Numbered from the stretch's first letter, positions 14,667 through 58,106 are shown. The stretch is DNA of 64,000 bases from Klebsormidium nitens (GCA_000708835.1 DF236986.1:241387-305386), one strand, 5' to 3'. A program made the numbers and translations. The notes: generated by a model from the letters alone, not told the origin.

Positions 14667-17600
14667 TCATTCAGCTAACGAGACGACGTTAAGCGCCATG
14701 CTTACAGCTTCCACGACCGCCGAAGCGTAGATCTCTTTCTGCTTGGAAGGGACCTCCGCCCCCTCCGCACTCAAGGCCCGAAGCAACACCTGACCGTTGA
14801 GCCTGTGTTGGTAGACGGTGTGGACAACGCCTACCAGAGTCCCAAGACTGCTGACGTGCTGCTTCCACTCCCCCTTTGCGAAATCAAAAATGATCATCCC
14901 GACGTCTGCGAATAGCAAGCCAACAAGGCACGCCATCAGGGCGTTGAAGTTCGGCCCCGACAGCCCTCCGAGCAGCTTATCAACGGCAATAAGAACCGGG
15001 TCCGTCCATCCGCCGGTGGGCAATTTCTTGGTTCTCTCTATGGTATACGCGTCTGCGAGGCCGCCAAAAGTGCGGATCGCCATGATGATCCCCGTGAGGC
15101 AGCTGATGGCCGCCACGGCCTTGTCCGTGCCCGACGGGGTGTCGATCGCTTCCTGGAACTTGTAGATCAGCATGACGGTCTGCGCGCCCAGCTCGAGCAG
15201 CGCGTCGGTCCCGACGAGCGGCCATTGCCAGCATCCGTCCAGATCCTTGCCCACCGTCGTACGAGTGGCGTCCAACACTAGCATGGTCGCCAGGTTGGTG
15301 AAGATGTGGGCCCCCTTCAGCACGCAGTAGCTGATCAAAATGGGCGTCTTCGGCACGTCCGTCAGCCTCTCCTGCTTTGCCACGTGCGAGCCGCCGAGCG
15401 CGAGCGCCATCCCGTTGCGGAGCGTGTCGCCGAAGTACTGCGCGAGCCCGGCCGCGTCGTCCGCGAACGAGGCGCCGTGTCCGGTGAGCAGTTCGGACGC
15501 CCACGCGTACGCGATGTGCGCGGCGAGGCCGAGCAGCAGGCACAGCAGGTCCAGGACCGTGAGCTCGTGCCCCGTGATCCACTTGTAGAGCATGCTGACG
15601 AACGGGATGTCGATCCCCGCGTCCATCGCACCGAAAACTGCGTCCACCAAATCTAGAAACGGGTTGCTCTTCAGCGCGTCGCCGCCCGCTCGCAACGCGC
15701 CGGTCACGATGTCCGTCACTTCGGACGCTTCCAGCGGAAACAGGTCGTCGAGCAGTTTGGGCAGGTCCAGGATGAGCGGCACCGCCGCCAGCACATCCCC
15801 GGACAGTAGGTCGTCCAAATCGGACAGCGTGCCCAGCAGCGCAGTCGCCAGCTTCGAGTGCGCCGGCTCGGAGCCGCCCGGCGGCACGATTGGGATGGGC
15901 CCGGGGGTTTGTGCGCCTGCCGGTGGGATCTGGTTGGTCGCCCGGTTCTGCATGGTTTTGACCCGGGAACTGGAGGCCTGACCGCACGCTTTCTGTCCGA
16001 AGTCGTTGTCGAGCAAGTTGTTGGACGGCGCCGGCAAGGCCGCGCTTGAGGGCCCCGGCGACAGCTTCAGGATCTCGCCCTCGCACAGCTTCACGACGCC
16101 TGCCAGGTTCGCGGGCGCGAGCATGCCCGCGAGCGCGCTCGCGCAGCCGCCGAGCAGCTCGCGCATGCGCGCCTTGGCCGCCAGGATGTCGCCCCAGTCG
16201 AAGAGGAGCATGAGGAACTGGACGAATTGCTCGATGAGCACCCCGATCTTCCTCACAAAGTCCACCACGGTACCCACCGCTTTCTCGACGCTGTCCACCA
16301 CGATCCTCGCGAGGCTCTCCGCCGTCTGCACGAACACCGTCACCTCGTTCTCGATCGCGACCACGATCTCGCGCGCCTTCTCGACCGCCTCCTCCGCGAG
16401 CCGCGCGGCCGCCTCCGCGGCCTCTTTGACCGCGTTCCACGCGTCGCTCACCCAAGAGAAGAACCCCTTGAGGACGCGCGCGGCCGCGTCGGGCCCTCGC
16501 CGCGCGCACTGCGCGGCAAGCTTCTCGGTGCGCGCGCGCACGTCCTCCCCGGTCTTGTGCAACGTTAGCTTCACCTGGTTCCCCTCCAGGAACTGCAACG
16601 AGAAGCCCTTGTACCCGTCCAAAGAGGCAGCAAGGCCCTCGACAGAGATGGCGGCTCTGCGGCGCGACTGCAGATGCACCGTCGTCGGCCGCGCGGGGAC
16701 TTCGTCGAGGGGGATGCTCAGCCGCGCGGACTGCGCGGTTGGCGCGTGGGGGTCAGCATTGGGGGGGCCGCCAGAATTCGCGCGCAGCCTTTTGCGAGGG
16801 GCCTTGGGGAGGGCTGCAAAAGGAGCAGGAGCGAGGTCGAAAACGAAGTCAACTTGCCTAGAGTCAGGAAGAAAAAGGTTCTATCAGCAAAGAGTATCCC
16901 AAAAAGATGCCGGCTCAAGAGGCCAGCCTATGACGGATAGAACAAAAACGAGATTAGAGGGTTAGGGTACTACATACATTTAATAAAGATTGGTTGAGAG
17001 AGGCCGGGAATAATTCGAAGGATCCTCAGTCACAATCAGACGTTGTCCGCTGAAGCGAACACTATTAAATCTATCATTCTGAAATTCCGTAAGGCGACCA
17101 AAGGCTGCAGAAGCGAAGTGCAAAAGCCTGCCGTCCTTTACAGTCCTGTTTCAACTCCGTTTGAGAAGGCGACTCAAATCGAAAGAGCCTGCACGTGCTC
17201 GTGTGTTCGGACCAAGCAAGCAGCTTCAGCACCTTACGGTAGTTCTGAATACCGGTTTCGCTTTAAAAGCCGTGTAAGAGGCGGTCCTGGTTGCGCTTTT
17301 AGAAGAGGCTCAACTAGAGATTAAATAACGCCGCAGAAGTTGCGCAGCTGCGTTTCGGTTTACACCCTCAAGCACTTTTGGGATCCAGTCCGAAGAGAAC
17401 CCTCCTTAATCGTTCGGATGTCCAAGTCCTTTCCCGTCCCTTATTTTTCGGACAGCGCTCACCAGGTGGAGGGTGCACCGCGGCCATGACGTGGCACATC
17501 GCTTGCGCCGCCTGGTCTGCTGTGGATTGCGGGACGTCTTTGTTGAGCAGCCGGTTGGTGGGTGGGGTCCCTGCGTCCTTCTGCTTCTGATATGCGGGGG

Positions 17601-20600
17601 ACCACGGTGGGGCGCGCTTCGGGTCGGTCAGCTGCGTGCCCTGCAGCCCATGGTTGCAAAACGCGTTGTTTGTGCGATCTATGCGCAATATGGGATCGCA
17701 AGCGGTTTGCAGAGAAGACTTCACACACTACCCCAGAGCTAAGCACTGGGAGGATTTGCAGAAGACGCGCTCAAGTTTGTGTGACTGTTCCCGATAATGG
17801 CAACACTGGCCTCTCTTGAACTTGTAGCTTTCTCATGATCCTATTTGCACCGTCCCAAGCCGGGAGATGTTACAGTGACCGAAAGTGTGCAGCCTCGCTC
17901 TTCAGCGAGAAGCGGAAAAACGAGAGGAACCATTCCGTATCAAAGTGCAAGGCTGCCAGAGGGAGTGACACCAGCTCTCTGCTCAATGAGGAGCCATTTC
18001 CTGAGGAACCAATGGCAAAGCTTACAGCTGTCAGTAGCCGAGAAGCACAAGGGCAGTGACTTGGAGCCCGGTCTCTCGTCCCGACTGAAGGAGCCGGGAA
18101 CAAGGGAAACGGTCCTTGCAGGATCGGAGCCGGGGACACTGTTGAAAAGGTCGGCTGTAACCGTCGGATGGTCTTCAGGTACTCAGGCGGACGCTTCAAT
18201 TTAGCCTCGTGGTCTTAGAAACAGAACTTACAAGTCGTCAGATCTTGCTTCTGAGGAAGCATCGAAGGCTGAGACTCAACGAGCACCGACGTGACACCGG
18301 CCCGACTGCAACCCCCTTCCAACGGCGTTCCCGGTTCCGACCGTGCGAGGACTGTTTCTCCTTGTCCCCGCTCTGAAGGAATAAACGAGGGATATGCCTT
18401 ACCGTTACTTTGGCCAGGCGCGCGTGCGCGCTCACGTCGGGCGAGATGAGCTGCCGCTCGCTGCGGTGCATGAACCCCGCCCAGACCGCGAGCTGGGGCG
18501 CGGTCGCGGCACCCGCGACAATGTGTAGCATGACGTCACCCTTGTTGTCGCTGACCGCAGCGAGAGCCACGTCGGAGCTGATGGGGTACTCCTTGTTTTT
18601 GTAGACCACCTGTAAGCGCAGGACGGGCAAGTGGATTTGGACACGCTCAGGAGGAACGCCCACGTGGCATGCCGGGCGCAGACGGCTTGTTGCAGGATCG
18701 GCAACGATTTGAAGCGCCTCAGGAGAAGCGCCCCTAAAACCAGGTGCACAGTGCCTGACGAGAAGTTCGCTTCTGTAAATTTCGCCCTGGCCCACAGTAT
18801 ATTTCGGAGAGAGGAGATGCTGCCCGTGCACTGAAGAGGTAGGCTTGCCACAGAATGTCAACAGCCCTCTGCTTTGAAGGTCCGGGATGAACGGATGGGG
18901 GACTTGAATCCGCCGGCCAGATCTCAAGCAGAAGCTGCTTTTTAAGGGCACACATTACGTGCTTCTAATAAGCGTGTCGTTTCGGCATGACAAGCAACGC
19001 CTGGCAGCTTGTGCTGCCTCGTATAGACGCCCGCGGGCTCACCGTTGTCTGGTCCGAGGCGTAGATGCGGAACTGCTCCCGCGCGCGGAAGCCGCCGTTC
19101 GCTTCCTGCGCGCGCACGTGCACCATGTAGACCGGCTTCGAGCGCGTCTCGTCAATTCGCGCGTCTGGCCCCTCCCCATAAGAGTAGTCCTCCTGCAGCT
19201 CGCACTGGACCAGCAGCTGCGGCGGTGGGGGCCGCTTCAATTTCTGCAGACGGGCGGAGAGACGATTGTGAGATTCATGACGGGGGAAGGGAAGAGTTGT
19301 GAGACCCAGCACGAGGAATGAAATGGTTGGGACGCGGCACGAGGAAAACGGAAAGATTGTATATCTGCAGGAGAGTACTTTTGGGGAGAAGCGCATAGCT
19401 TGCTGGGGTGAGACTTCTTTGCAACTGATCCCAGCCAACGGCTTGCTAAAAGTTGCCAGAAGAAACTCGAGAAACTTCACTCAGGGTCGTGAGGTAATCA
19501 GCGACCGGTGGGTAAGGCTTTGCATTGCGACTCCTTCAAAGCTCTTACATTGTTAACGAGACAGTCCAACAAGCGGAGTCAGACGCATGCGAGAGCTCGC
19601 GCCTTTCTACCCTCTGTCTGCTCCGACCAACCAGCCAACTGCACTCGTTCGAAGCAAGCACATAACTGGGGAGAGGAAAAAGCTGAGAAAGTCCTTGCTT
19701 TCAGCAAAGGCACGTGCCTCACCTGATTGAAGTCAAGAAAGATAAAGCAAGCCGAGATATGACAAGGTAACCACACTGGGACGGGTACGGTTAGTCTGGT
19801 GGTTAGGATAGGCCTGGGCGCGGAGCAGGTAAGCTTTTTGGGTTAGGGTTTTTAGTGTCGGTAGGAGCTTACTATTATCTTGCCTTATTATTATCTTTCT
19901 TGCGATTCATCCTCACCTGCACGTTATTCAGCACGTTTGCGTGGAACCGCTCGTGGGGGTCCGTCATAAACCCCGGCATGCGGAAGTCAAAGGAGGGGCC
20001 ATAGCCCATCTTTGGAACTTCGACGGTAAAGACCACCCGTCCTTTGCTGTCCGTAACGGGCCACACCGTGCCTTCCGGTGGCGTCCCGTCATCCTGCCAC
20101 GTGCCCTCCTGGATGGCCGTGACGCTGACGGGCCCTCCCCCCGTGTCCGTCGTCACTCGGACGGGGACAGCGTCCGAAGTGCCCAAATGCTTGACGTACC
20201 ACCAATGCAGGGGGTAACCAACTAAGGGGTCGCCATTTGCCGCAATTGCCTGGAAGAGAGCAAGTGAGAGAGGGCGATCGCAATCCTGGCCTGCAATTTG
20301 TGATTTGAGATGCTGAAGTTTCGTTGGATGTTCCACCCATGGTGAGCCTCTTTCATAACTGTCGAGCGGGCACAGCTGAAACGTTTTAGAACGACCGATT
20401 CTCTGGCGGGAGAATGAGCAGCAACAATTCCTTGGAAGCTCCGGCCTCCACATGGACTTGAAGTTTCTGAATGATGCACAAAGCAAGCCTCAAAAGGGCG
20501 CCACGCCATCACAGCAAACTTAAGATCCTTTCTTGAGAAACGGCCCGTTCAGGAGCCGCCATGTTGCACAAAATCTCATGCCTGCAAACTGGGTTTGCTA

Positions 20601-23600
20601 GCGAGCCTGACCTTCACCGTCAGCTCGTAAACAGCCGGCCTGCCTTCCTCCTCGCCCGGGTCCGTGCACACCGCCGTCGTTTCCAGCCACGGGTACGTGG
20701 GCTGCACGAAAGGCAGGTCGGACAGCCACCGCCCCGCGCCCGCGACCGTCGCAGCCGTTCCGTCCGCGCTAAGCAACACGCCGTTGAGTCCGCCCAGCGT
20801 GTTGTCGGTCAGGCCCTGCAGGCGGAACGCAGGATTTTGAATGGCTGGGGGACAAGCGGCCAGGCTGTCACCATCGTCCATCTGGTCAACGTCGACAAAT
20901 GGACGGCTCAGATTTGTCCTTTTTGGGTCAAGAGCAGGGGCCGGCCAAGCTTGCGAGTCTGATCCTGGTCGGTAACAGCTAACGCCCAAATGCACTCTCA
21001 GACTGGCTTCATTAGGTGAAGATCGGACGGCTGTGACAGCGTTTCGGAAATTTCAATATTGTGCGGGCCGCGTGCCTGGTAGTCGAAGTTCCAGTAGGCG
21101 AGCAGGTCCGCCTCGTTGCCGCGCAGCTTGGTGTGCATCGCGGACGCCAGCTCGATGGGCGTCCGAAACGTGTCCCAGATTCGGACCTCGCCGAGCAGGC
21201 CACGGAAGAGCGACCCGGGTAGCGGGGCGGCTCCGGGAGACTGTGCGTCCGCACCGATGTAGATCAAGGTGCGTCCCTTTGGCAGGAGCTTGCCGGGAGA
21301 AGCCGTAGCGGTGATCGAGACTGGGGCGCTTGCGGGAACCAGGTTGCCGTCCAAGTAGATGCTGCGGATAAACCACTGCGATGAGTAAGTGCGCGGCCAA
21401 GCAGCATGCGGATGGACGTGCATCTTGCAGCTTGCATCGTTCGTACAAAAAGGGAGTGAGCAGGCGAGCCAGCTCCCAAATCGAGTGCGCAATTTAAGGA
21501 ATTGGCCTCCATGACTGCAGAATTACACATTCTACACAAGAGAGTGAAGGTGGGACTCAGCTGCATTTCTTTAGAGGTTTGAGTTCTCTTGCCAGGGCAG
21601 CTCCGAGCTTACGGTGGTCCAGGGAGACAATGAATGCAAGCACAACTTTTCACTCGGTCCGTGTCAACAAACTGGCGCCAAGATTGCGACGTCAACAAGT
21701 GCTATATTCTCAAAAGCAGCAGGCCATACTTTATTACCTGTTCCTCTTTGACTCCTGATAATCTAGAAGATCTCAGACTTCAGAACGGAAGAAGAAGACC
21801 GCGTGTAGAGCGAACGGCATGAGAAGCTACGAAAAGAAACGAAGCGGGAAAGGGCCGTACTTCAGGGCGTCACCCGGTTTTCTGACGGCCGCCACGTGGT
21901 GCCACACGCCGTTGTTGACTGCCGTTCGGACTGTGCTCACAGCAACCGTCTTCCATGCGGTTGAGGTAACTTCCGAGGTGCAACTACAAGACAAGCAGAG
22001 TCTCTGTTAAGCCAACTCTATTGTCAAAACTCTGCTGTCGAAAATTTGTTGCCAGAACAAAAACAGGGTTTTGACCGCCTCAGTGTGTACTTACCGAATC
22101 CGAGCAGGTGGGGTAAGCACCTTAACACGAAAGTGCACCGAAAATGAGCTGGCTGCGGGAACGTGCTCAACTGGAGGAGCGGGTATGAGACAGGCACGGC
22201 TTGTCTGCTCAACAAAGCAACGGAGCTAACGATCACTGCGAATCGAAGAGAACAACGATTGCCAGCTTTCTTGTTCTTACAGACTCGAAGCTTGTCGCTT
22301 CCTCCGAAGTGATTGCATCGCCGAGCGCAGAGGTTTGGGATAACGGCCTCACAAAGCAAGCTTTTCAACAAGGAGATCTGCAACCCGCAACTCTCTTGAG
22401 GCCGCATCTCACGTGAATTGGATACTGCCGGCATCGAGCAGCCGGAGAGAGATGCCGAAGGGCGAGTCCTCCGCAGGGCACACCGACAAGAGCTCTCCTT
22501 TGCTGACGGTGTTCACCCAGGCCTCCACCGTCACTGACTCCTGCTCTAATCCGGTTCCTTGAGCCACGTCGATTGCGACGAAAGCAGGCGCACCTGCACA
22601 AGAAGACGTTTCGAACTGCGATTAGAAATGCATTTCGCTTGAGTGCTGTGATCTTGAGCTGGCAGGCTCGATGTGAAGCTGCCAGGCTCGACTGAGAGTT
22701 ACCCCAGGAGTGCTTTGATTTGAGCTTAGACAAGTCGATGCGAAGACTGCTGCTTCAAGTAAAGTAACTTGCCACAAGCACGGCCTGTGTCAAGTGTCAA
22801 GAAAGCTGTCAAGGAGTCGGCACGATGGCTGCCAGCACACGCCGTTATGGACTATATGCCGATGTTCGAATGCCACAGGAATTTGGTCTTGTCTCGAAAA
22901 ATTACAAATGTTTGTGCAGGACTCCAGACTTCTAAGCAGGGTGAGCTCACCTCAACCCCAGGCTGCATTCTAAAACATCTTGAAAGCCTACGACAATTGT
23001 TTCAGACGACTGAATTAAATGAGATACCAACAGTTGCCATCCGGCCCCACCTTTGGCGGGCTGTCCCAGCGCATTTGCGGTCTGGTCCGTGTTGAGTCCG
23101 AGCGTCCGAGTGGCGCCAAACGCCACCGACTGCAGCGATCCGTCGTCGCTTATTGCCAGCTGCAGCTTGCCATCTTGCGTCTGACGGCCGACCACGTCAC
23201 ACGACCCGAAAAAGATGGTCCCGCTGCGCGCGTCAACGGTCAGCGGCGTGGTGATGCAACTAGGCACGGGGAGAAGCGCCAGCAAGTAGCCGTCGCGAGC
23301 ATCCAGGACTGCGACGAGGCCCGACCGCACCGCTGTGTAGACGTGTGTCAGCAGAAGGAAGTGTGACTTATTTCGTCAGGGATCTGCAAGCAACGGCACT
23401 CAGACGTTCGAGAAGAGGAGCTAACCCTTCGAAAAGGAGGAGCAAGCAAAGAAGCAGCCTTTCTGCAATCGTCCTGCTAGGGAAGTTTGTGCACACCATG
23501 TGAAAGAGAGACATGTCCGACCCGTTTGCAATGTAGAATACTGAAGGGCTCATCATGACGTTCTCGGTAGTACGGTTGAGGGACTTGTTTGTGGATTAGT

Positions 23601-26600
23601 GGACCAAAAGCGCTGCGCAGTTTACCTCTTGGTTGAAGATCTGCGGCGGCAGCAGCCCGTCGTCCAATAGCGTTGCGCCACGTGGCGGGCTCCCCTTCTT
23701 CGCCCCAGCCAGCCCCGCCGGCAGCTTGCGTGTCCAGCGTAGGTCCAGCGTGCCGCGTGAGAAACCGGCAACGATTCCGGCAGACGTTGTGGCGACCAGC
23801 AGTTGGAGGTCCTGGCTTGCAGCAAGGCCAGTGATGGTGCCGAGGTCGCCGTCCAGCGGTCCTCCCTTTCGAAACACGCCTGCACGCAAGCACAGCAACA
23901 ACAGGCCATCAGTTGCAATTTTCGAACTGAGTGAAAAAATCTGCGAGTTCGGGATGCACGATCCTGTTTTCAAGGCGGTCAAGACTTAAAACTCGGGCTG
24001 ATTTTAGGTGGTAGGATTGAAGCGGATACAATTTGCGGATGATGATTACCGAAAAAGAAAGGAAAGGCTTGCCAAGCTGCTTCTTACAAGCTTCATCGAT
24101 TGTGAAGCTTGAAAGAATCTCCGGGTTTGCAGCTAATGCCAGGTTGGAGGAAGAAGAAGGACGCGAGTGCCTTGAACTACAAAATTGAAGTTCGAAAAGA
24201 AAAAAAAACGACCCTAGCGCTGCTCCGAACAGAGCGTTATACATTTGCAAAGGTGAAGCCTCTTGCTGTGTACCCAATATGACCGTCTCTCGGATGACAT
24301 GTCTGCATTATCAAAAACGTTCTTAGCAGAAGATTCAAGTGCTCCGAACCAACAGTCCTAAGTATTGAACGTGGCTCAGGGATCAATGCATCTTCCTGCA
24401 ACCTGCTCCCTTGAGAAGAAAACGACCGTTTCAGCATTGCTAAATCATAGGCGTGCTAACCCTGCTGTTTACAATCAACTATCCGTTCCAGTCTCTGCGC
24501 AGATCTAGTCGCTCTACGGTTCCTTTTCTGACGAGTTGTTTCTCACCTGCCGTCCACGAAAAAATCTGCTTCCCAGCCCTGTCCACGAAAAACAGTGCGC
24601 CCGACTCCGCACACGCCAAACCCAGGTTGTCGCCCGTTATCTGGTTAGCATCCGACAAGGGAGTCGCTGGTTGGAAGGACCAGATCGATTCGCTATACAC
24701 CGCGTAGCAGGTGCTGAGTCGAGCCGCAGACTCGTCCGCGTAGAGGCCTCGCAGGCCGGAGGCTGGCAGCCCCTTTGGCGTCCACCACTCGTTCTCTAGA
24801 GGAGAGTCGTCTCCCGGGCCGGTACGAGGCTTGGGAGTACGCACGTGCACACCGCCCTACAGAAAATTGGAAAAAAAAAGTCCTTTTCCTTTGGTATCTT
24901 ATGAGCCTACTCACAACCAGCAACTTGGTCAGATATGATGGTAAATCAGAACGGCTGCTTCGTGAAACAGGGCTGACCAAAGGGGTGGTTCTTGAAGGCC
25001 AGCGGTGCATGGGAGGTTGAGTCTCACAGTTGCTCTAGCGCAATTTCCCAAGAGCTGTCTTCAAGCACGCTGATAGCCTCTTACTTTAGGTAAATCTGCG
25101 GATATTTTTATATGGTAAACGCAAGAGACCGTTCCGACCTATCGCCAGAAGGACTCGATGCTCAAATGGCCCTCCTCACACAACCCCGACCATCCAGAAG
25201 GCAATTCAGAGCGTGTTTTCGGTTTGATGAAAAACAATTCTGCCTGTGCGATGCGAAGAGTGAGAAGAACTAGACGGGCGCGTACCTGCAGGTCAGCGAC
25301 CACCAGCATGCTTCCGCTGATGACAGGCGCAACAAACTCGCCGCTCTCTCCACCAGCGCTCAGCCCCTCCAGGCCTGGCACCACTCTTTGCTCTCCCGAC
25401 GCTGCGTCGATCGCCAGCAGACCGTCACCGGCCGTCATGACGTAGAACGAACCGTCATGTACCGCTGGCGCCGAGGAGGCGCTCTCCAAATCGAGCGCCC
25501 ACGCGCGCTGCCCGTCCACCGCATGCACGCCGTACAGCGCGTTGCCCGTCCGGAAGCACAACACGTTCGTGCGGACGTCCAAAAACCCCCCGCTCGCGGG
25601 CGCCTCCTCGCCCTTGGCCGCCCAGTGCGCGGCGTAGCTGTAGGGCCACGTGGGCTGGGCCTGGTTAAGCAGGTAGGGGAAGGCGCTCTTGTCCAGGGAC
25701 AGGTCTGTGAACGCGATCTGGAGTGAGTTGCAGGCGGGTTTGGTTCCGCTAACCCGGTTCTCGATATCCTCGACCGCACTCTCGTCGAGCCGTAAGAGGG
25801 CGCTCAGGCGTGGCTCTGCGCCCGTGAGCTCGACCCCCATACGGCTCAGCAGCTTGGGGGCCTCCACTGCGAGGTCCCAAATCCGGACGTCCTTGATCAG
25901 TCCACTGAAGAAGCTGCCCGTAGTGCCCTGCCAGGCAGCGCACCCGATCTGCATACACCAGAAAGGCAACGGGTCGGCGACTGATATTGTGGTGGGAGGG
26001 CCGTCAGAGTCAAACATCTCAGCCTGCGGTGCTGTTGACAAGGAGACTCCTCACTTACAAGCACGAAGTGTGACCGGACTTTTATTCTCCAACAATCGTA
26101 AGAGAGGGGTTGCGTCAAGAATAGTCTCCAAACAAGGGGCTCAGTCAAAGAGTTGTTCGAAGGAACTGCGCGGTTGCTTGAGTAGCTGAGGAAGACACGT
26201 CGAAAGAGAGGGCCCAGCAGTCAGGTCCTACCAGTGACTCAAGCTCACCGTAATTTGAAGCGGCTCAGACACGGGCAGGAGGCCGTATGTGCTTTGAATT
26301 GCAGTAGTAGGGTCGTCATTAGATGAGAGTTTGAGCGCGACGCCATCCAGAAAGAGAGCGGGCTGGCCCTGCCGTCGCATGGCAGCCACGTGGTGCCACC
26401 TAAGAGACGGAGCAGCGATGCTTGAGCGCAAGATAGAAGCGAAGAACAAGCTATTAACCATATTCGATGATGGGCAGGAAAGATACAGGCCCTGTTTCAG
26501 ATACGTCAGACGGTTTCCCCTCATTTCTTCTCAAAAGTCCTTTCTTTGACAGAAACAATACCCTGCGCAGATTGATAGTGAGGGACAGGCTTGCAACGAT

Positions 26601-28932
26601 TCACCGGCATGACAATCTGAGCACTCAGGCCCTGCTCGAGACGCATCAATCAACTTGCCTTCGTTCATTCTGCGTCTTTAACTCTTCAATGTTAACAGGA
26701 ACGGACAGGATGCTAGTGAAGGGCGTTGTCGGAAGCTTCAATTACTAAAGCATGAGCTGTGACAATCAACGGGAGGTTGGCTTCGGTGGACGAGCGTGAT
26801 CCGCAAATGCGACACTTTGTCAGCGGGCCGAATCTCCTCGCCGCTTCTTACCTCCCATCTGTGGCGGACGTATTGTCGCTCAAGTGCAGAACCCCCTCTC
26901 CGTCCTTATCCATCACTGCAAAGCGCAGCTCGCCCTGCGGCCCGATGTTGAAGCGCGCCCCATGCGTCGCGCCGTCTTCCGGGTGCGCGCAGATGACCTC
27001 ACCACCCGTGCTGGTACGCACCCAGGCCTCAAACGTGAAGTCCCCACTGCCTGGGTTGAACGCGTGATCAGCTGGCGGGATGACAATGCTGCTCTCAGCG
27101 CCATCGAAGTAGGCCGCCGTGCTCTCTGTGAAACGGCGGCACACGACGGTGCGCCCGGCTGGAAAGATGGCCGAGCCGTTGACTACCGTCACCTGTGTGC
27201 CAGTCCGGCCTAAGTCCTTCAAAGAGAACGCAGGGTCTGGAGGGGGGAGGATGTTCTGGGTGGCCATGCGCGCCAAGTCGTAGCCACGGAAGGAGTTGCC
27301 ACTCAAGAAAAGCGTCGTGCCTTCGACCACTGGGTCTGCCAGGGCGCCGTCCAATGGACCATCATCCATGTCAACCCGGAAGCGCAGCGCGCCCGTTTTG
27401 AGATCCACGCCCGAAACCCGGCCCTTCCCGTTTGCAGCTCGAGCATCCACAAGCACCAGCAGCGACAGCGCTTCGCAGATTGCAGGTTGGAAGAGTGCCG
27501 ACGCGTCCTCGTAGGAGAACACCCACCGTTGCGCGCCTGTCCTGAGGTTGACCGCATAGACGTCGCGGTCTGCCCCCAGGCACACTGCCAGCTTGAAATT
27601 CTCGCTGACCTGCGGTGCGTAGCGCGCCGAGTCGAGCTGCACAGTGGTGCCGTCTGCGGCGCCGCTCTGGCGGGGGAAGGACCAGCTCTGCTCTGAGAAG
27701 CTGGCCTGCACTGTGTGGCACAGCAGGCGCCCGTCGAGGCAGAAAAAGGACGAGGAGCCGGTGTGATTGACGGGACCGAACTGGCCGTCGGGCGGGAACT
27801 CAAGCGGGGGCCACAGGCTGGGGGCGCCGTGGTCCATAGCAAAGCCGAGCATCTGCACGGGATTGCCGGGGGATATTGTGTCAAGGCCTATAACCAGGGC
27901 GAACTTTTTTAACCACCCAGACCTAGTCCACTTGGGCAGCCTGCCTGCAACAAGGGCACCTCTCCGATTGATGCAATGTGTCTGGTTGAAAAGACCCTGT
28001 CCGCTTTGTCCTGGTTGTCAATCAGAAACTTGCTCAGTCCTCCCTTTGAACAAAGTCACCGAAATAGTGAGCTTCTTTACAATCTAACCATCCCCTTGCA
28101 AGCTTTAGCTCAAACCAGACGACAACTATTTGTCCTGAAGAAACCTGCTTACGATTTGTTTCAGCTGTATGAGGTGCAAACAGCGGTTGCAAGTGGATCA
28201 AAAGATGGAATGATGTAAGGAGACTGTAATGAAAGAGATGTAAGGGAGGCAGCTTCTAGGGCCTTTCTGTCATGCACTGCTTTCAGGGATAGAGTTCTGC
28301 TGAGTTGATCAATGATGACCTCAGTTGGAATCCCCAAATTAGTGCTGATGAGTCAACAGTCAATCAGCGCCCGCTGACATTGGTTGAAAGTATTTCCATA
28401 ACACTCAACCAAACAAGTCGTTTTGTGTCCTGGATAGCCATACCTGAACCTTTCTCTTCCCAGTTGCCTCGTCCACTGCCTTGGTCATCACTGCCACAAC
28501 GTCCCCCACTGCTGTCACAGCGAAGGCGCCAGTGACATCAGGCTCCGCCCAACCTGTGGCGTCCCGTGCTAGGCCTGCCGGGTCCACACTGATTGGCTGG
28601 ACGGTCCCTTTGAAGACTCCATCGTGCGTCCGCAGCGCCCGCAGCTTGCCTTGCTCTGCAAAGAAGAGGCATCCCGCGCCCATGCAGCTGAGCGCGTAGC
28701 CTTCATTGTCCAGAAAATCAGGCTGGTAGGGCAGGCTGTTGGCCTGGATTCCCTGGCCCGTGAGAATGTCCACCGACCGAAAGGAGGACGCAGTTGGCAC
28801 CACAACCTGCAAGCCGCCCCCGCTGAGCAACGAAGCGTCCAGGCCCGATGCGTCCAGCGACCAATTGCCCCCAGCGGGCAGCAGAATGTTGTCCTGCAGG
28901 GAGGCCCCTTCTTCCGCTACTCTGTACGCCAT
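14667..28932 (-). CDS. Giant (~2,380 aa) uncharacterised protein: PQQ/BamB-like beta-propeller repeats, two LamG/ConA-like jellyroll domains and a C-terminal helical/hydrophobic region
   Basis: Exons 28932-28444, 27852-26852, 26399-26249, 26023-25286, 24856-24547, 23879-23626, 23332-23051, 22593-22413, 21983-21861, 21762-21738, 21375-21076, 20815-20612, 20249-19917, 19243-19043, 18609-18403, 17640-17463, 16813-14667. All junctions are phase-compatible except 23626/23332, which needs an additional 3n+1 micro-exon. LamG motifs: AYFDG..FTFEAWV..DGRWHHVAA..FSGLIKDVRIW, and VTVEAWV..NGVWHHVAAV..FRGLLGEVRIW..AYWNFD. Propeller motifs: VYAVNLRTGAQRW, VSGVDLKTGALRF, LYGVHAVDGQRAW, VAVLDARDG. Confidence 0.82.
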
Positions 28933-29814: not shown

Positions 29815-32423
29815 ATGTTACTTCCCGATTGGATCGCTGCGATTGGTTCGACTGAGCCGCCACCTGACCATCACTTGTTCAAATTGCTCCAAGAAAGCCT
29901 CTGCGGTTCGTCCAGAGCAGTGGGACTCCAGTCTTCTCCCCAAGCACGGCAGCAAAGGCTCAGCGAGTCCGACGATTCAAGGGAGCGCTGCATTGTTCAG
30001 GATTCCGCACCCGGTCCTAATCCTCCCCCAGACGGTCCTCCACCGCCTCTAAAGGAGTTTGTCTTCAGCTGGCAGTCCACTATCTCAGATCAAAGTCCGT
30101 TGTCAATCCCCCCCGTCCAGCGCCCCAAGGCTGTTCCTGAGCTTGGTCTCTTTGTCTTTGATGATGGCCTTACAGTCTTTGTCGTTGACACGAGAAGAGC
30201 CAAGGCAACGCTCACATGGCAGGTGTCAGCACAGAGCCTGCTGCAGGGGTGGGAGGTCTTTGATGCGCACTTGTACGTGGTGGACGGGACCGTGCTGTCG
30301 CGCTACGACCTCTTAGCTGAGAAGCCCACCACTGTCGCAACGTTGGACCTTTATGACGGGCCTGCAAGCGAGTCTCAGCGGCTCAACGCCGCTCTGCACG
30401 CCGCCTGGCAGGGCCGACAGTGGGTGTCCCTCTTGTACTGGCTGTATTCTGAGGCCGTCGGCATTTCGGAGAGCCTGCCGCGGCCGCAGATTGACCTAGT
30501 GGCAGGGTTTAAGAAGTATTTCCTCACTATCGCCCCAAAGCTGCCAAAAGACTACGTCTTCTCTCTCCCCATGGTGCCTAACCCCTCGCTGCCAGCCCCT
30601 GTCCCTGTCATCACCCGGGAACAGCTCACGGGGGACCGAACCTGCCAGCTGTTCCTAGCGTTGTTGGATGTGCTCCAGGTGTTGGGCATGCCTTACCGCA
30701 GCGGCGTTGACCCGCCAACGGTGTGCGCCTACATGAAGGACCACCCCGAAGAGGCAATCAACTTGCTCTGGTGTTGCCGGGAGGGCTACTTGGGCCTCGG
30801 CGTGAACGCTTTCGATGCAAAGAGTCGGGAGTTGGACGATTTGTTGGCCGGAAATGCACTCAGGTTCTCTGCGCCGGTGTTCAGCAGCACAGACCGCGGG
30901 CTCTTCGTTCTTTGCTCAAACGGGTCGGTGCTGAACATCGAATGGGATACAGGAGGCATGCCTGCTGCCATGGGAGTTGTGCGGAGGTATCCGTCAGTGA
31001 CAACACAGGTATGTTGCGTACATTGGTTTGGGGTTTCTAAAGCGGGACCGGCGAGACTCCAAGCATCTCTTGTGTGCACCGCTGATCTGCTTGTATTGCA
31101 TCTTGGCAAGCTCTGCTTGTAGCCTGGGGGCTTTTGGGCCTGGCTGTTTGTCTATGGCTTTGTCTTAGATTGGAGTCTGTATAAGACTTAGTCGAGTTTA
31201 GGCAATCGTTTGGAACATTTGACAGAGTGCTCACTCCAATGCCCCTCAGAACTGTACCACATAGCTGCACTTGGTGGCAGTTTACCTGACATGACTACTC
31301 TGCAGAGTTCTATCGTGTTTGTTGATGCTGCGCCAATGCCACTTTACAGCAAGGCCCTTCTGAGCCAGCTTTAGTGTGTCATTTGGTTGCAGGTGGACAA
31401 AGGACCATTCGGGCCAGGGCATATAGATTTATGGCTTCCATACTTCTGTCAATCGTCATTCCTCAACCCCGCTCTCTTGCGCTCCCGTTGCAGGCGGTGG
31501 TTCGGTCGGGCCTTGTATTGTGCGACCCTGCTGCGGCGCTCTTCTTCCTTTCGGAGGACAAGGGCCTTTGTTCAGTCTCATTGCGAGGGGCGGCGCCACA
31601 GAACTTCCCACCCCCGCAAGCCCCGGATCCAGCCACTTTCCAGTACCAGTGGGATTCCGCCTACACAAGCCTGCAGCGTATGCCCCCGGTGTTCAGCGTC
31701 TCTCGGCAAGTCTGGGCGTCCCTGCCAGCTCTATATGCGTTTCAAATTCCAGACGGGGGCGACGCGCCCTTTAGCGCGCCGCTGTGGCAGCCACTCCCCG
31801 GCGACCGCTTCACCTCCGTCGAGGTGGATGAGGACAGCGGGACGTTGCTGATCGTAAACAGCAGTGGCTCAGCCAGTTCTTACAGCCTCAACGTGCCTCC
31901 AGGCTCCGCTCTGCGTTTGGTTGGGCAGACCACGACCACCTTCAACAACGCAATCGAGCCAGGCCGTTACCCTCTTCCCGCCTGTTCCGCAGCGCTGATC
32001 AAGCCCGTAGCATCCTCCGCCAACGGCGCGGCTTCCCCTCCTAAACTGCTGCTCGTCGAGACGGACTCCCAGTACGGGTCCGCTTCAGGCACTGCGTTCG
32101 CTGTAGCCTCTCGTCTAAGCGAGCCTGGTGGCCCTTTTCAAGACGGCGATGTAACACGCCTGGGGACGATCCCAGGCATTGCCTTCAGTGCCCCCATCGG
32201 GTTTTACAACGAGCAAACGGACCAACCGCAGGCGGTTGTCGCTTGGGGCAGTGGACCTCCATCGCAGCTGTTGGACGAGTTGGCACCCGCACCTGGGGCC
32301 CAATCGCTGGCGTCTTCCGCATGGAGTCGCGCCATTGTTGGCAAGTCGCCAGCTGAACTGATGGCCAGCGCACCGCCAATTGGGTTGGGGTTGCGTCCGG
32401 GGCTGACCAGCATCCCGTTGTAA
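29815..32423 (+). CDS. Uncharacterised ~700 aa protein, probably beta-propeller-like, divergent from the giant gene
   Basis: Long ORFs 29815-31008 (donor CAG|gtatgt) and 31494-32423 (acceptor ttgcag|GCG), both phase 0. Beta-strand-rich repeats include LYVVDGTVLSRYDL, FSAPVF..LFVLCSNGSV, LFFLSEDKGL and LLIVNSSG. Possible extra 3' exons at ~32511-32559 and ~32694-32787 (LEMKDLTVVRREFNQID-VHWVRFN..PIIYGFNLATQA*) could replace the 32423 stop. The start codon is uncertain. Confidence 0.65.
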
Positions 32424-56395: not shown

Positions 56396-58106
56396 AAGTC
56401 TTGCCATCGAAGCCAATCTTGTTGGCCCCAACAAGGTTTGGATCGGGTTTTCGTGCGCCATTGGTCACTAAAAGCTTGTGGTGTGGTGCAGAGGTACGGG
56501 TTCTGTTCCGCATGTACGAGGAGGACTGCCGCCCCACCAACAGCTTCATGGAATTTGGTATATCGTCCGACGCTGACATTCGGCAAATACTGGACCTTAT
56601 GCAATGGACCGATGCCGTTGACATCACCCCAGGTACGTGCTATCTAGTCTTCCTTCCCGTCTTATCCTTGAGCGACCGGTGTGGCTTCAAATCCATATAT
56701 GCCTGGGGAATATGTACGAAGGTGGTGGGGGGTTAAAAAGTTACACGGACAACAAACCGAAACTATAGAGATTGTCAAGTCCTGGTTAAAACACTCTGAA
56801 TAGCGTGCTCAGGTTCTTTCACCTTGTTTGCAGAAAGCAATGTCGTAATACAAACTTGATCAGGTATCCATTGACTCCATTTCGACAAAGTTACATCAAT
56901 TCAACTGCCTCTCGCCACATGTTCATTTCCATTTCAACCTCACCTAGGCGCTCTTTACATAGCTCTTGCTTGATTTGATCAAATGTAGGGCTGTTCACAA
57001 TACGTGTTTTTAAGGAGCTGCCCCTTGCCGGATGAGACTCCAGGCGTTCGTGTGGGGTCATCCGATTTCAATTTCAACGGAGCTCTTTCTTGACGAGCAT
57101 GTTTGGCCCCACACGAAACTAAACAGGAAAGTATTTGTTTTCACCAGCGATGCTCTGTTAAAATCTGATGTCTCGACCAAGTCCGTTTTCTGCCCTTGCT
57201 GCCGGGAAACACTGCGTATGTGCGGACATCCTGCGACCAAGGGGTCGTCAAGAATCAACCGCTCAGTTATGGAGACACCTCACCGGGGAGACCTTGTTCG
57301 ACCGTTCATTCTCTATTTGAGTTCCCTGGAATATGAGGTAGTTGTCTTTGGCATCAGCTGCTTGTTCCAGATTACTAGAGAATCTCACTCAACCATCAAT
57401 CTGCGCATGCAACACAGGCGCCCCCCACGTCAACCTGTCGCTTTCATCACCCCGCCTTTCTGCCATTGCTTATGCAGGCTCCCCCGCCGGCGGCCGGCTC
57501 GTCCAGAGCATGGCCGACCTGCAACCGTACGGCTGGTACGACCGAATAGAAACATACCTAGATCTGCAGCGAGTGCAAAGCCACGTGAAAACTGCCGGCC
57601 ACGACAGCAGCACGCCAATCCCGTTAGACCGCCTGCTCGGCGCGCGTTTCCCGGCGCTTACGACCGCCCCGCGCATTTTCTACGAGGACCCGGAGCAGCA
57701 CGCGCGGTGGCGGGACGCGCAATCGGCGCTGACAGAGCTCGCGCGGGACGGCGGGGGGGGAACTAGCATGGAGGAGACGAAGTCGCTGCTCGCGGTAAAA
57801 GACAGCGAGCGCGCGCTCGAGTTTGACAGCGTGGCGGTTAGTGAGGAAGCGGCCACGCTAGTGGTGGGGGACTTTGCGGAGGTGGGCAGCGTGACGGCGG
57901 TAGAGGCTCTGCGCGAAAAAGCGGACCGGCTGACGGAGCGGCCGCAGCTGGCGGGGGGGGCGGGGAAGGCTGTTGTGGCGGTGCTGTGCGTGAAGGGGTA
58001 TGATCGAGGCAGCGGGGGTAAGCAGGGGCTTCTACGGTACGCGCAGCAACGGGACGTGCTGCTGGCGGAGCGGAGTCGTACGGGAGTTGATACGATGGTT
58101 GGGTAA
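56396..58106 (+). CDS. Uncharacterised protein with a possible C-terminal PD-(D/E)XK (REase-fold) domain; 5' part uncertain
   Basis: Exon ending 56632 (..ILDLMQWTDAVDITP G|gtacgt) is phase-compatible with the GC-rich exon 57478-58106 (G|GC SPAGGRLVQ..ALEFDSVAVSEEAATLVVGDFAE..VEALREKADRL..VVAVLCVKGY..*). A possible first exon lies at ~56072-56131. Confidence 0.5.

Follow-up and report, generated by a model that had tools for sequence, protein, structure and literature searches.

A giant propeller and LamG gene of the alga Klebsormidium nitens, divided in two by its annotation, and its bacterial relatives

A long, intron-rich reading frame on the minus strand of scaffold DF236986.1 of the terrestrial green alga Klebsormidium nitens raises three questions: whether it is one gene or two, where it came from, and what its product might do. 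The window, a stretch of 64,000 nucleotides of this 305-kb scaffold, holds the frame at positions 14667-28932, where GenBank lists two co-directional gene models separated by 116 bp, one with a product of 1,283 amino acids (aa) and the other, KFL_000370340, with a product of 1,111 aa. An earlier note on this DNA, made from the sequence alone, had read a single spliced open reading frame (ORF) of ~2,380 aa with ~17 introns.

One gene across two annotated models

As RNA evidence we used Logan contigs from four runs (X1, X2, X5 and X6) of three studies, placed on positions 18000-23999. Every exon from 18402 to 23883 is joined by a single 4.9-kb contig in X1, and likewise in X2; both contigs extend 2.8 kb further 5' of 23883. 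Shorter contigs of X5 and X6, which come from two further studies, contain most of the same exon joints. The joint 20814>21075, present in all four runs and thus in the three studies, bridges both annotated genes in frame (...AYWNFDYQ/GLTDNTLGG..., the slash marking the junction). The introns seen in the RNA, eight as listed joints and two from loose ends, are GT-AG in every case except this one, which is GC-AG. With the joint shifted by one base, the intron measures 260 nt and has the splice sites CAG/GCACGC ... CTGCAG/GG. It contains both the annotated stop codon of the upstream model (20998-21000) and the annotated ATG (20881) of KFL_000370340. Residues 1103-1303 of a bacterial relative (P0010) align across the same gene-gene junction (tblastn, 21172-20585). 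Because RNA contigs of three studies splice across the gap in frame, and because bacterial relatives are continuous there, the locus is one gene rather than two: a single expressed nuclear gene of K. nitens that the annotation has cut at a GC-AG intron. The public gene model is corrected in this way, its two "hypothetical proteins" being a single protein of about 2,350-2,400 aa.

Translation of the RNA-supported exon chain gives, from residue 23 onward, the stored protein that stands for the 3' half of the gene (P0001). For the five 5' exons, a junction-by-junction splice heuristic supplies predicted boundaries, and the full protein is ~2,347 aa long with the annotated 5' model or ~2,415 aa with the heuristic 5' exons. 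The earlier note's giant ORF is thus borne out by RNA contigs that join both annotated halves, and the possibility it had raised that the exons belong to separate transcripts is not; its intron richness also holds, with a count here of 15 introns in 16 exons in place of ~17. Beside the gene on the scaffold lie NUDIX and RNase_T genes, and KnChR is found ~25-40 kb away. The parts of the gene are as follows.

14667-28932, minus strand: whole gene, one transcription unit, spanning the annotated 1,283-aa gene (28932-20998) and KFL_000370340 (20881-14667)
28444-28932, minus strand: exon 1, with the annotated ATG at 28932 and a predicted donor at 28444 (ORF and splice heuristic)
26852-27981, minus strand: exon 2, propeller 1 and start of LamG 1, predicted boundaries (Pfam PQQ_2 and Laminin_G_3; tblastn to bacterial residues 158-464)
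26249-26399, minus strand: exon 3, middle of LamG 1, predicted boundaries (Pfam, tblastn, splice heuristic)
25286-26023, minus strand: exon 4, end of LamG 1 and start of propeller 2, predicted boundaries (Pfam, tblastn, heuristic)
24547-24856, minus strand: exon 5, its 3' end at 24547 from the loose end of an RNA contig, its 5' end predicted
23626-23879, minus strand: exon A, propeller 2, ending ...IFNQE in phase 0 (RNA joints; frame from bacterial homology, E 1e-9)
23051-23383, minus strand: exon B as in the RNA contigs (RNA joints)
22413-22593, minus strand: exon C, start of LamG 2 (RNA joints)
21861-21983, minus strand: exon D, LamG 2 (RNA joints, Pfam)
21076-21361, minus strand: exon E, end of LamG 2, closing with ...LLAYWNFDYQ (RNA joints, Pfam)
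20816-21075, minus strand: GC-AG intron of 260 nt
18402-20815, minus strand: beta-rich middle part, four RNA-verified exons (20815-20612, 20249-19917, 19243-19043 and 18609-18402)
17463-17639, minus strand: Pro-rich linker exon (RNA contig loose end and P0001 mapping)
14667-16813, minus strand: last exon, helical C-terminal domain of ~670 aa and stop codon (ORF, P0001 mapping)

Inside the GC-AG intron, a stretch of ~100 nt (20946-21047) also occurs in contigs of X2 and X5 that then continue into unlike sequence; in X5 it differs at two bases, 20978 and 20997. The stretch may belong to a dispersed repeat or to another transcript.

Domain architecture and the helical C-terminal domain

The protein runs from a PQQ-type propeller through a LamG domain, a further propeller and a second LamG domain to a beta-rich part, a linker and a helical C-terminal domain (C-domain), the order that had been read from the sequence and that exon-level Pfam scans and collinearity with bacterial proteins uphold. 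In the exon-level scan PQQ_2 (PF13360) reached 24.9 and 27.2 bits in single exons (E 2e-5 and 4e-6; gathering threshold 27.6), as against 65-88 bits in collinear bacterial relatives. Exon fragments of Laminin_G_3 (PF13385, E 5e-4) occupy profile positions 2-72, 69-108, 118-147 and 88-149, which covers the profile twice, and two LamG/ConA-like jellyroll domains are accordingly present. In the precomputed Pfam results the annotated 1,283-aa product has two Laminin_G_3 entries, neither marked as weak, and a faint PQQ_2, and KFL_000370340 has no entry. The 670-aa ORF of the last exon matches no Pfam family. No signal-peptide-like hydrophobic stretch was found at the N-terminus of the algal protein, in agreement with the earlier reading, nor at that of its bacterial relatives.

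Two motifs mark the C-domain, the first of them already singled out in the earlier note as F-L-x-x-L-F-x-W-x-D-I-L and now recognisable as a family signature.

16182-16229, minus strand: family motif 1, FLxxLFDWxxIL, here QFVQFLMLLFDWGDIL
15498-15608, minus strand: family motif 2, IPFxSxLYKWITG, here IPFVSMLYKWITG, followed by a hydrophobic helix conserved in almost every member

Four hydrophobic helices, with Kyte-Doolittle peaks of 1.6 to 2.4, lie in the last 300 residues, the last of them at the very C-terminus. Across 43 family members one hydrophobic stretch, ~30 residues long and placed after motif 2, is nearly universal, and one to three more recur at conserved positions. From these conserved helices an association of the C-domain with membranes can reasonably be proposed, as a suggestion of the sequence and not as a result.

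AlphaFold models the C-domain as almost entirely helical (pLDDT 67.5). A Foldseek search of the Protein Data Bank (PDB) with the whole C-domain and with its first half returned nothing at E<=0.001. A wide VIA-align search gave generic helical matches alone (Z<=8.4 and Z<=7.2; Cry6Aa, at Z 5.4, is within noise), and a shape search of the ESM Atlas gave template-modelling (TM) scores <=0.2; these structural negatives rest on models of middling confidence and are no proof of absence. On the sequence side, a profile search of the PDB with the C-domain found no match, and word-index searches with the C-domain alone or with a 43-sequence profile returned only the query's own protein. Pfam, NCBIfam and PADLOC hold no match for the C-domain, for the accessory proteins described below or for the genes of the type-B operon, and the PADLOC anti-phage models match neither the algal nor the bacterial giant protein nor the accessory proteins. 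The proposal that the C-domain is a pore-forming or translocation domain found no backing here, since Foldseek, VIA-align and Atlas searches with two AlphaFold models gave no match to ClyA, colicin, Cry or Tc proteins. In sum, what the earlier note observed is confirmed, and its interpretation is supported in part.

Bacterial relatives, the neighbouring gene and a probable horizontal transfer

An exhaustive HMMER search with the C-domain recovered 357 cluster representatives at E<=1e-3, with a best identity of 33%. Many of these relatives are 2,200-2,300 aa long, match at residues ~1,620-2,000 and carry a strong PQQ_2 and two Laminin_G_3 domains. When a profile of 12 full-length members was used, 33 clusters scored at least 1,474 bits, nearly all of them with alignments that span 86-100% of the 2,287-aa query. 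Three clusters in this search bear the name of an organism, bacterial in each case, Undibacterium pigrum and a Myxococcaceae metagenome-assembled genome (MAG) among them. Compared with the window by tblastn, four bacterial members gave ordered high-scoring segment pairs from residue ~158 to residue ~2000, and gene and relatives are collinear over the whole length. Both C-domain motifs, FLxxLFDWxxIL and IPFxSxLYKWITGxxLTxLDLxCL, are present in the algal protein, and the W162 and IPF...Y...G positions are nearly invariant in the 43 members. Among the full-length members recovered to date of this unnamed bacterial family (~2,250 aa), the algal protein is the sole eukaryotic one.

The origins that could be read comprise Acidobacteriota (Terracidiphilus, Pyrinomonadaceae), Ramlibacter sp. 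WS9, Ca. Elarobacter, Eremiobacterota, Actinomycetota, Methylococcaceae, Lewinellaceae, Undibacterium, Myxococcaceae, Reyranella, Phormidesmis, Burkholderia paludis, B. aenigmatica and B. seminalis; members are plasmid-borne in Burkholderia, Undibacterium, Methylocystis, Stanieria and Kovacikia. According to the earlier note, PQQ and LamG fusions occur in uncharacterised bacterial and fungal proteins. The bacterial half of that statement stands and the fungal half found no support: no fungal relative was confirmed, Ascomycota appearing only in cluster hints from a language model (Atlas hits 0.90-0.92). No other named eukaryote occurs among the relatives examined, an absence only as good as those samples, and in a search of the literature neither the locus tags nor the run accessions nor this combination of domains turned up in any paper.

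Two types of bacterial relative can be told apart. Type A, auto-annotated as "LamG-like jellyroll fold domain-containing" or "BamB", has the domain order, length and both motifs of the algal protein and likewise no signal peptide; examples come from Undibacterium pigrum (P0034), Ramlibacter sp. WS9 (L005:4913-11950), a Terracidiphilus MAG (L004) and a Ca. Eremiobacterota MAG (P0025). Type-A proteins are 25-40% identical to the algal protein over the full length, and beside their genes lies an accessory gene with the same N-terminal module as the neighbour of the algal gene. The alga differs from these bacteria in its ~15-17 introns, in extra low-complexity loops and in a partner gene placed head to head instead of in an operon, and no adjacent papain-like protease gene was found in it. 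Type B shares with the alga the helical C-domain and both motifs; in contrast to the algal protein, its members are ~1,150-1,370 aa long, have an N-terminal half without a Pfam match and branch outside the clade of the algal gene. They are carried by Burkholderia aenigmatica, B. seminalis, B. paludis, plasmid pMSMB0856 of Burkholderia sp. MSMB0856 and Acidobacteriota. The type-B gene closes a five-gene operon of unknowns (~760, 550, 330, 300 and 1,200 aa) without Pfam matches, and this operon is conserved between Burkholderia and Acidobacteriota (L021:4508-14034, L008-L016). Type-B operon genes were considered as kin of the type-A accessory protein and rejected (E 0.07-0.7).

Several bacterial loci deserve separate mention. 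On pMSMB0856 (L021) the type-B operon stands between insertion sequence (IS) elements and a thiazole/oxazole-modified microcin (TOMM) bacteriocin cluster. Plasmid pUYM01 of Undibacterium sp. YM2 encodes a 1,157-aa "LamG domain-containing protein" that carries the C-domain (L022:8405-11878), near a HipA toxin-antitoxin pair, an IS6 element and an Avs1 anti-phage gene. At L018:4090-13405 a type-A gene is called in three pieces (767, 647 and 1,134 aa) beside a ParE/Phd toxin-antitoxin pair, and is either a frameshifted pseudogene or a product of long-read assembly errors.

The neighbour of the algal gene, which starts 880 bp from it, is relevant to the question of origin.

29815-32423, plus strand: head-to-head neighbour gene, annotated product of 707 aa, candidate partner (large ORFs 29815-31122 and 31374-32423)
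30070-30429, plus strand: module of the neighbour gene common to the bacterial accessory proteins (BLASTP, hhalign, tblastn)

An accessory gene of 520-760 aa adjoins the giant gene in L002, L004, L005 (two copies) and L017, and the accessory proteins are related to one another. The algal neighbour matched them in pairwise BLASTP (E 1e-7 and 3e-7; E 1.6e-8 in the pool of all ORFs of the locus) and matched their profile in hhalign with a probability of 95% (E 3.7e-8). Three unrelated operon proteins, used as negative controls for the profile, gave E 0.07-0.7. When four bacterial accessory proteins were searched by tblastn against the 64-kb window, matches better than E 1e-3 fell only at 30070-30429. 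Since the head-to-head neighbour and the accessory genes of the bacterial operons have an N-terminal module in common, the simplest reading of these sequences is that a two-gene module was transferred together. A papain-like Peptidase_C1 gene also adjoins the giant gene in L002, L004 and L018 and is fused to it N-terminally in P0008, and is not universal in the bacteria. No match to this protease within the window is convincing; the best lies at 57833-58060 on the minus strand (E 0.003, 32% over 77 aa), ~29 kb from the giant gene, and may be an ordinary cysteine protease gene of the alga.

A tree of 56 rows (IQ-TREE, LG+C20 with posterior mean site frequencies), with which an earlier FastTree analysis agrees, groups the algal gene with a second intron-bearing copy as sisters (support of 100 in the Shimodaira-Hasegawa-like approximate likelihood-ratio test) on a long stem nested within the type-A clade of bacteria (96, then 94); type B lies outside that clade. 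The second copy was assembled from Logan contigs of SRR14092358/59/60 (L026:1-3972 and L023:1-2631; GC 0.53-0.58). It is 40-53% identical to P0001, and the two breaks in its alignment coincide with introns of K. nitens. It has a stop at the invariant Trp of LFDW, another in frame 174 codons further on and a change of frame near L023:1250, and looks like a pseudogene or a decaying paralogue.

The algal gene is thus nested among bacterial sequences, has introns and host genes as neighbours, and has no other named eukaryote among the relatives examined. Because of the collinearity, the nesting in a bacterial tree, the homologous neighbour gene, the spliceosomal introns in RNA and the ordinary algal genes nearby, there is good support for one transfer from a soil bacterium to the algal lineage, jointly with the adjacent accessory gene of the operon and most probably followed by the gain of ~15-17 introns. 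The same course, horizontal acquisition and then intron gain, had been suggested from the sequence alone and remains the best reading.

Possible roles and alternative readings

With moderate confidence we take the protein to be a scaffold for binding with a C-domain that interacts with a membrane, probably serving in conflict between organisms, encoded by a bacterially derived gene and working with a partner; as a whole this is our best explanation of the sequence and its context. Lacking a signal peptide, such a protein would be made in the cytosol. The propellers and the lectin-like LamG domains may bind a ligand, glycan or protein, its C-domain could attach to a membrane or insert into it via the conserved hydrophobic helices after IPFxSxLYKWITG, and the partner protein might act together with it; the evidence hints at each of these steps, from cytosolic location to partner action, rather than establishing it. 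Bacterial members lie on plasmids, beside toxin-antitoxin, Avs, bacteriocin and papain-like protease genes, and because of this location and these neighbours a role in conflict fits better than a housekeeping one.

A number of points weigh against this explanation. The conserved hydrophobic helices could be packed into the interior of a soluble bundle, a cytosolic protein with LamG and propeller domains would be unusual, and for any member the function of the family is read from sequence and context. Both AlphaFold models have middling confidence values (pLDDT 67.5 and 67.9) and matched no known fold. All relatives of readable origin are bacterial, as are their genomic contexts, and these cover a minority of the metagenomic relatives. 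The detectable similarity of the partner is confined to its N-terminal module, ~60-150 residues, and tblastn found no papain-like protease beside the algal gene in the 64-kb window. The algal branch is long (1.59, FastTree) and the tree does not fix the donor lineage. As to expression, the assembled RNA isoform meets a premature stop after ~900 codons, and in X1 and X2 a separate contig of lower depth (18000-18431) continues without splicing from exon 18609-18402 into the intron that follows it.

A rival reading makes the protein a pore-forming or translocating toxin. Propellers and LamG domains would bind the target cell, and the C-domain would unfold and, with its hydrophobic hairpins, open a pore or move cargo through the membrane, possibly once the papain-like protease encoded in the bacterial operon has cut it; microbes or grazers would be the targets of the alga. 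Such a toxin would accord with conserved hydrophobic helices in an otherwise amphipathic helical domain, with a C1 peptidase that adjoins the gene (L002, L004, L018) or is fused to its N-terminus (P0008), and with a patchy, plasmid-borne distribution in conflict islands. The likeness to alpha pore-forming toxins (ClyA/Cry6Aa, the colicin pore domain, the TcA channel) is one of layout only, a receptor-binding part followed by a part with hydrophobic helices; there is no sequence match and no structural match above noise. Comparison with ClyA, colicin, Cry, Bcl-2, the diphtheria T domain and Tc yielded no fold match (best VIA Z 8.4, generic bundles), no member, the algal protein included, has a signal peptide or known secretion signal, no immunity-like small gene was recognised, and the algal copy has no protease gene found beside it. 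We consider a toxin of this kind unlikely.

Equally doubtful is a permanent, non-toxic scaffold or sensor anchored in the membrane by a multi-pass C-domain, with the 1,700-aa N-terminal part as a binding platform either in the cytosol or, after unconventional export, at the surface. Each member has two to five segments with a Kyte-Doolittle mean of at least 1.6 over 19 residues, at conserved positions and with one of them nearly universal, and the last helix ends the protein, as might be expected of an anchor. The weak best structural neighbours include TMEM45A, the succinate-acetate permease and a urea channel (Z 6.6-8.3); however, these scores are within noise for helical proteins, just one hydrophobic segment is universal, and most of the C-domain is amphipathic.

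It can also be asked whether the locus is a decaying relic, a transferred gene that is becoming a pseudogene and is transcribed into mostly truncated or degraded products. Such decay is suggested by the stop at the junction of exons A and B, by the unspliced contig across 18402 and by the SRR14092358-60 copy with its two in-frame stops and frame change. In contigs of three runs exon B starts at 23383, and whichever of the three frames is read, a stop follows within 12 codons; the frame with matches to bacterial proteins (E 1e-10) does not open until 23375. The sole in-frame AG acceptor is a weak site 17 nt downstream, which would start the exon at 23366, and a continuous ORF therefore needs this alternative acceptor. 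Contigs drop minor isoforms and cannot display it. The unspliced contig reflects either a retained intron or an alternative 3' end and, if translated, would yield a protein that ends before the helical C-domain. Because the assembled isoform has a premature stop and one contig is unspliced after 18402, the productive full-length share is not fixed by the contigs. Against decay, ~1,450 codons after the break remain open over 10 exons, and P0001 retains 50 of the 57 residues (88%) that are invariant among 12 bacterial full-length members, with retention of 58-94% in single upstream exons. The annotated 1,283-aa model, moreover, stays in frame through both LamG domains. These observations give good support to the view that the algal gene has stayed under constraint, and a mere relic seems quite improbable.

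Two separate genes, as GenBank lists them 116 bp apart, or bacterial contamination of the assembly are practically untenable, the first being refuted by RNA contigs that splice across the gap in three studies and by the continuity of bacterial relatives there, the second opposed by at least 10 spliceosomal introns in RNA and ordinary algal genes on the scaffold.

The transfer proposed here would be an unusually large and clear case from a bacterium to a streptophyte, in which one operon seems to have contributed two genes at once, something rare in eukaryotes. It also draws attention to a large, conserved and unstudied family of soil bacteria with a C-terminal domain of ~650 aa without known fold or function. 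As a tentative proposal that we think rather unlikely in its full form, an early land-adapted streptophyte alga would have kept a two-gene bacterial conflict module as a weapon or immune device, made up of a propeller/lectin binder, a new class of membrane-attacking C-domain and a partner; if true, the same module would be a widespread plasmid-borne weapon of soil bacteria. Klebsormidium serves as a model for the move of plants to land, and if it has kept a conflict or membrane module of bacteria, this would be relevant to the ways in which early algae on land coped with the microbes of the soil.

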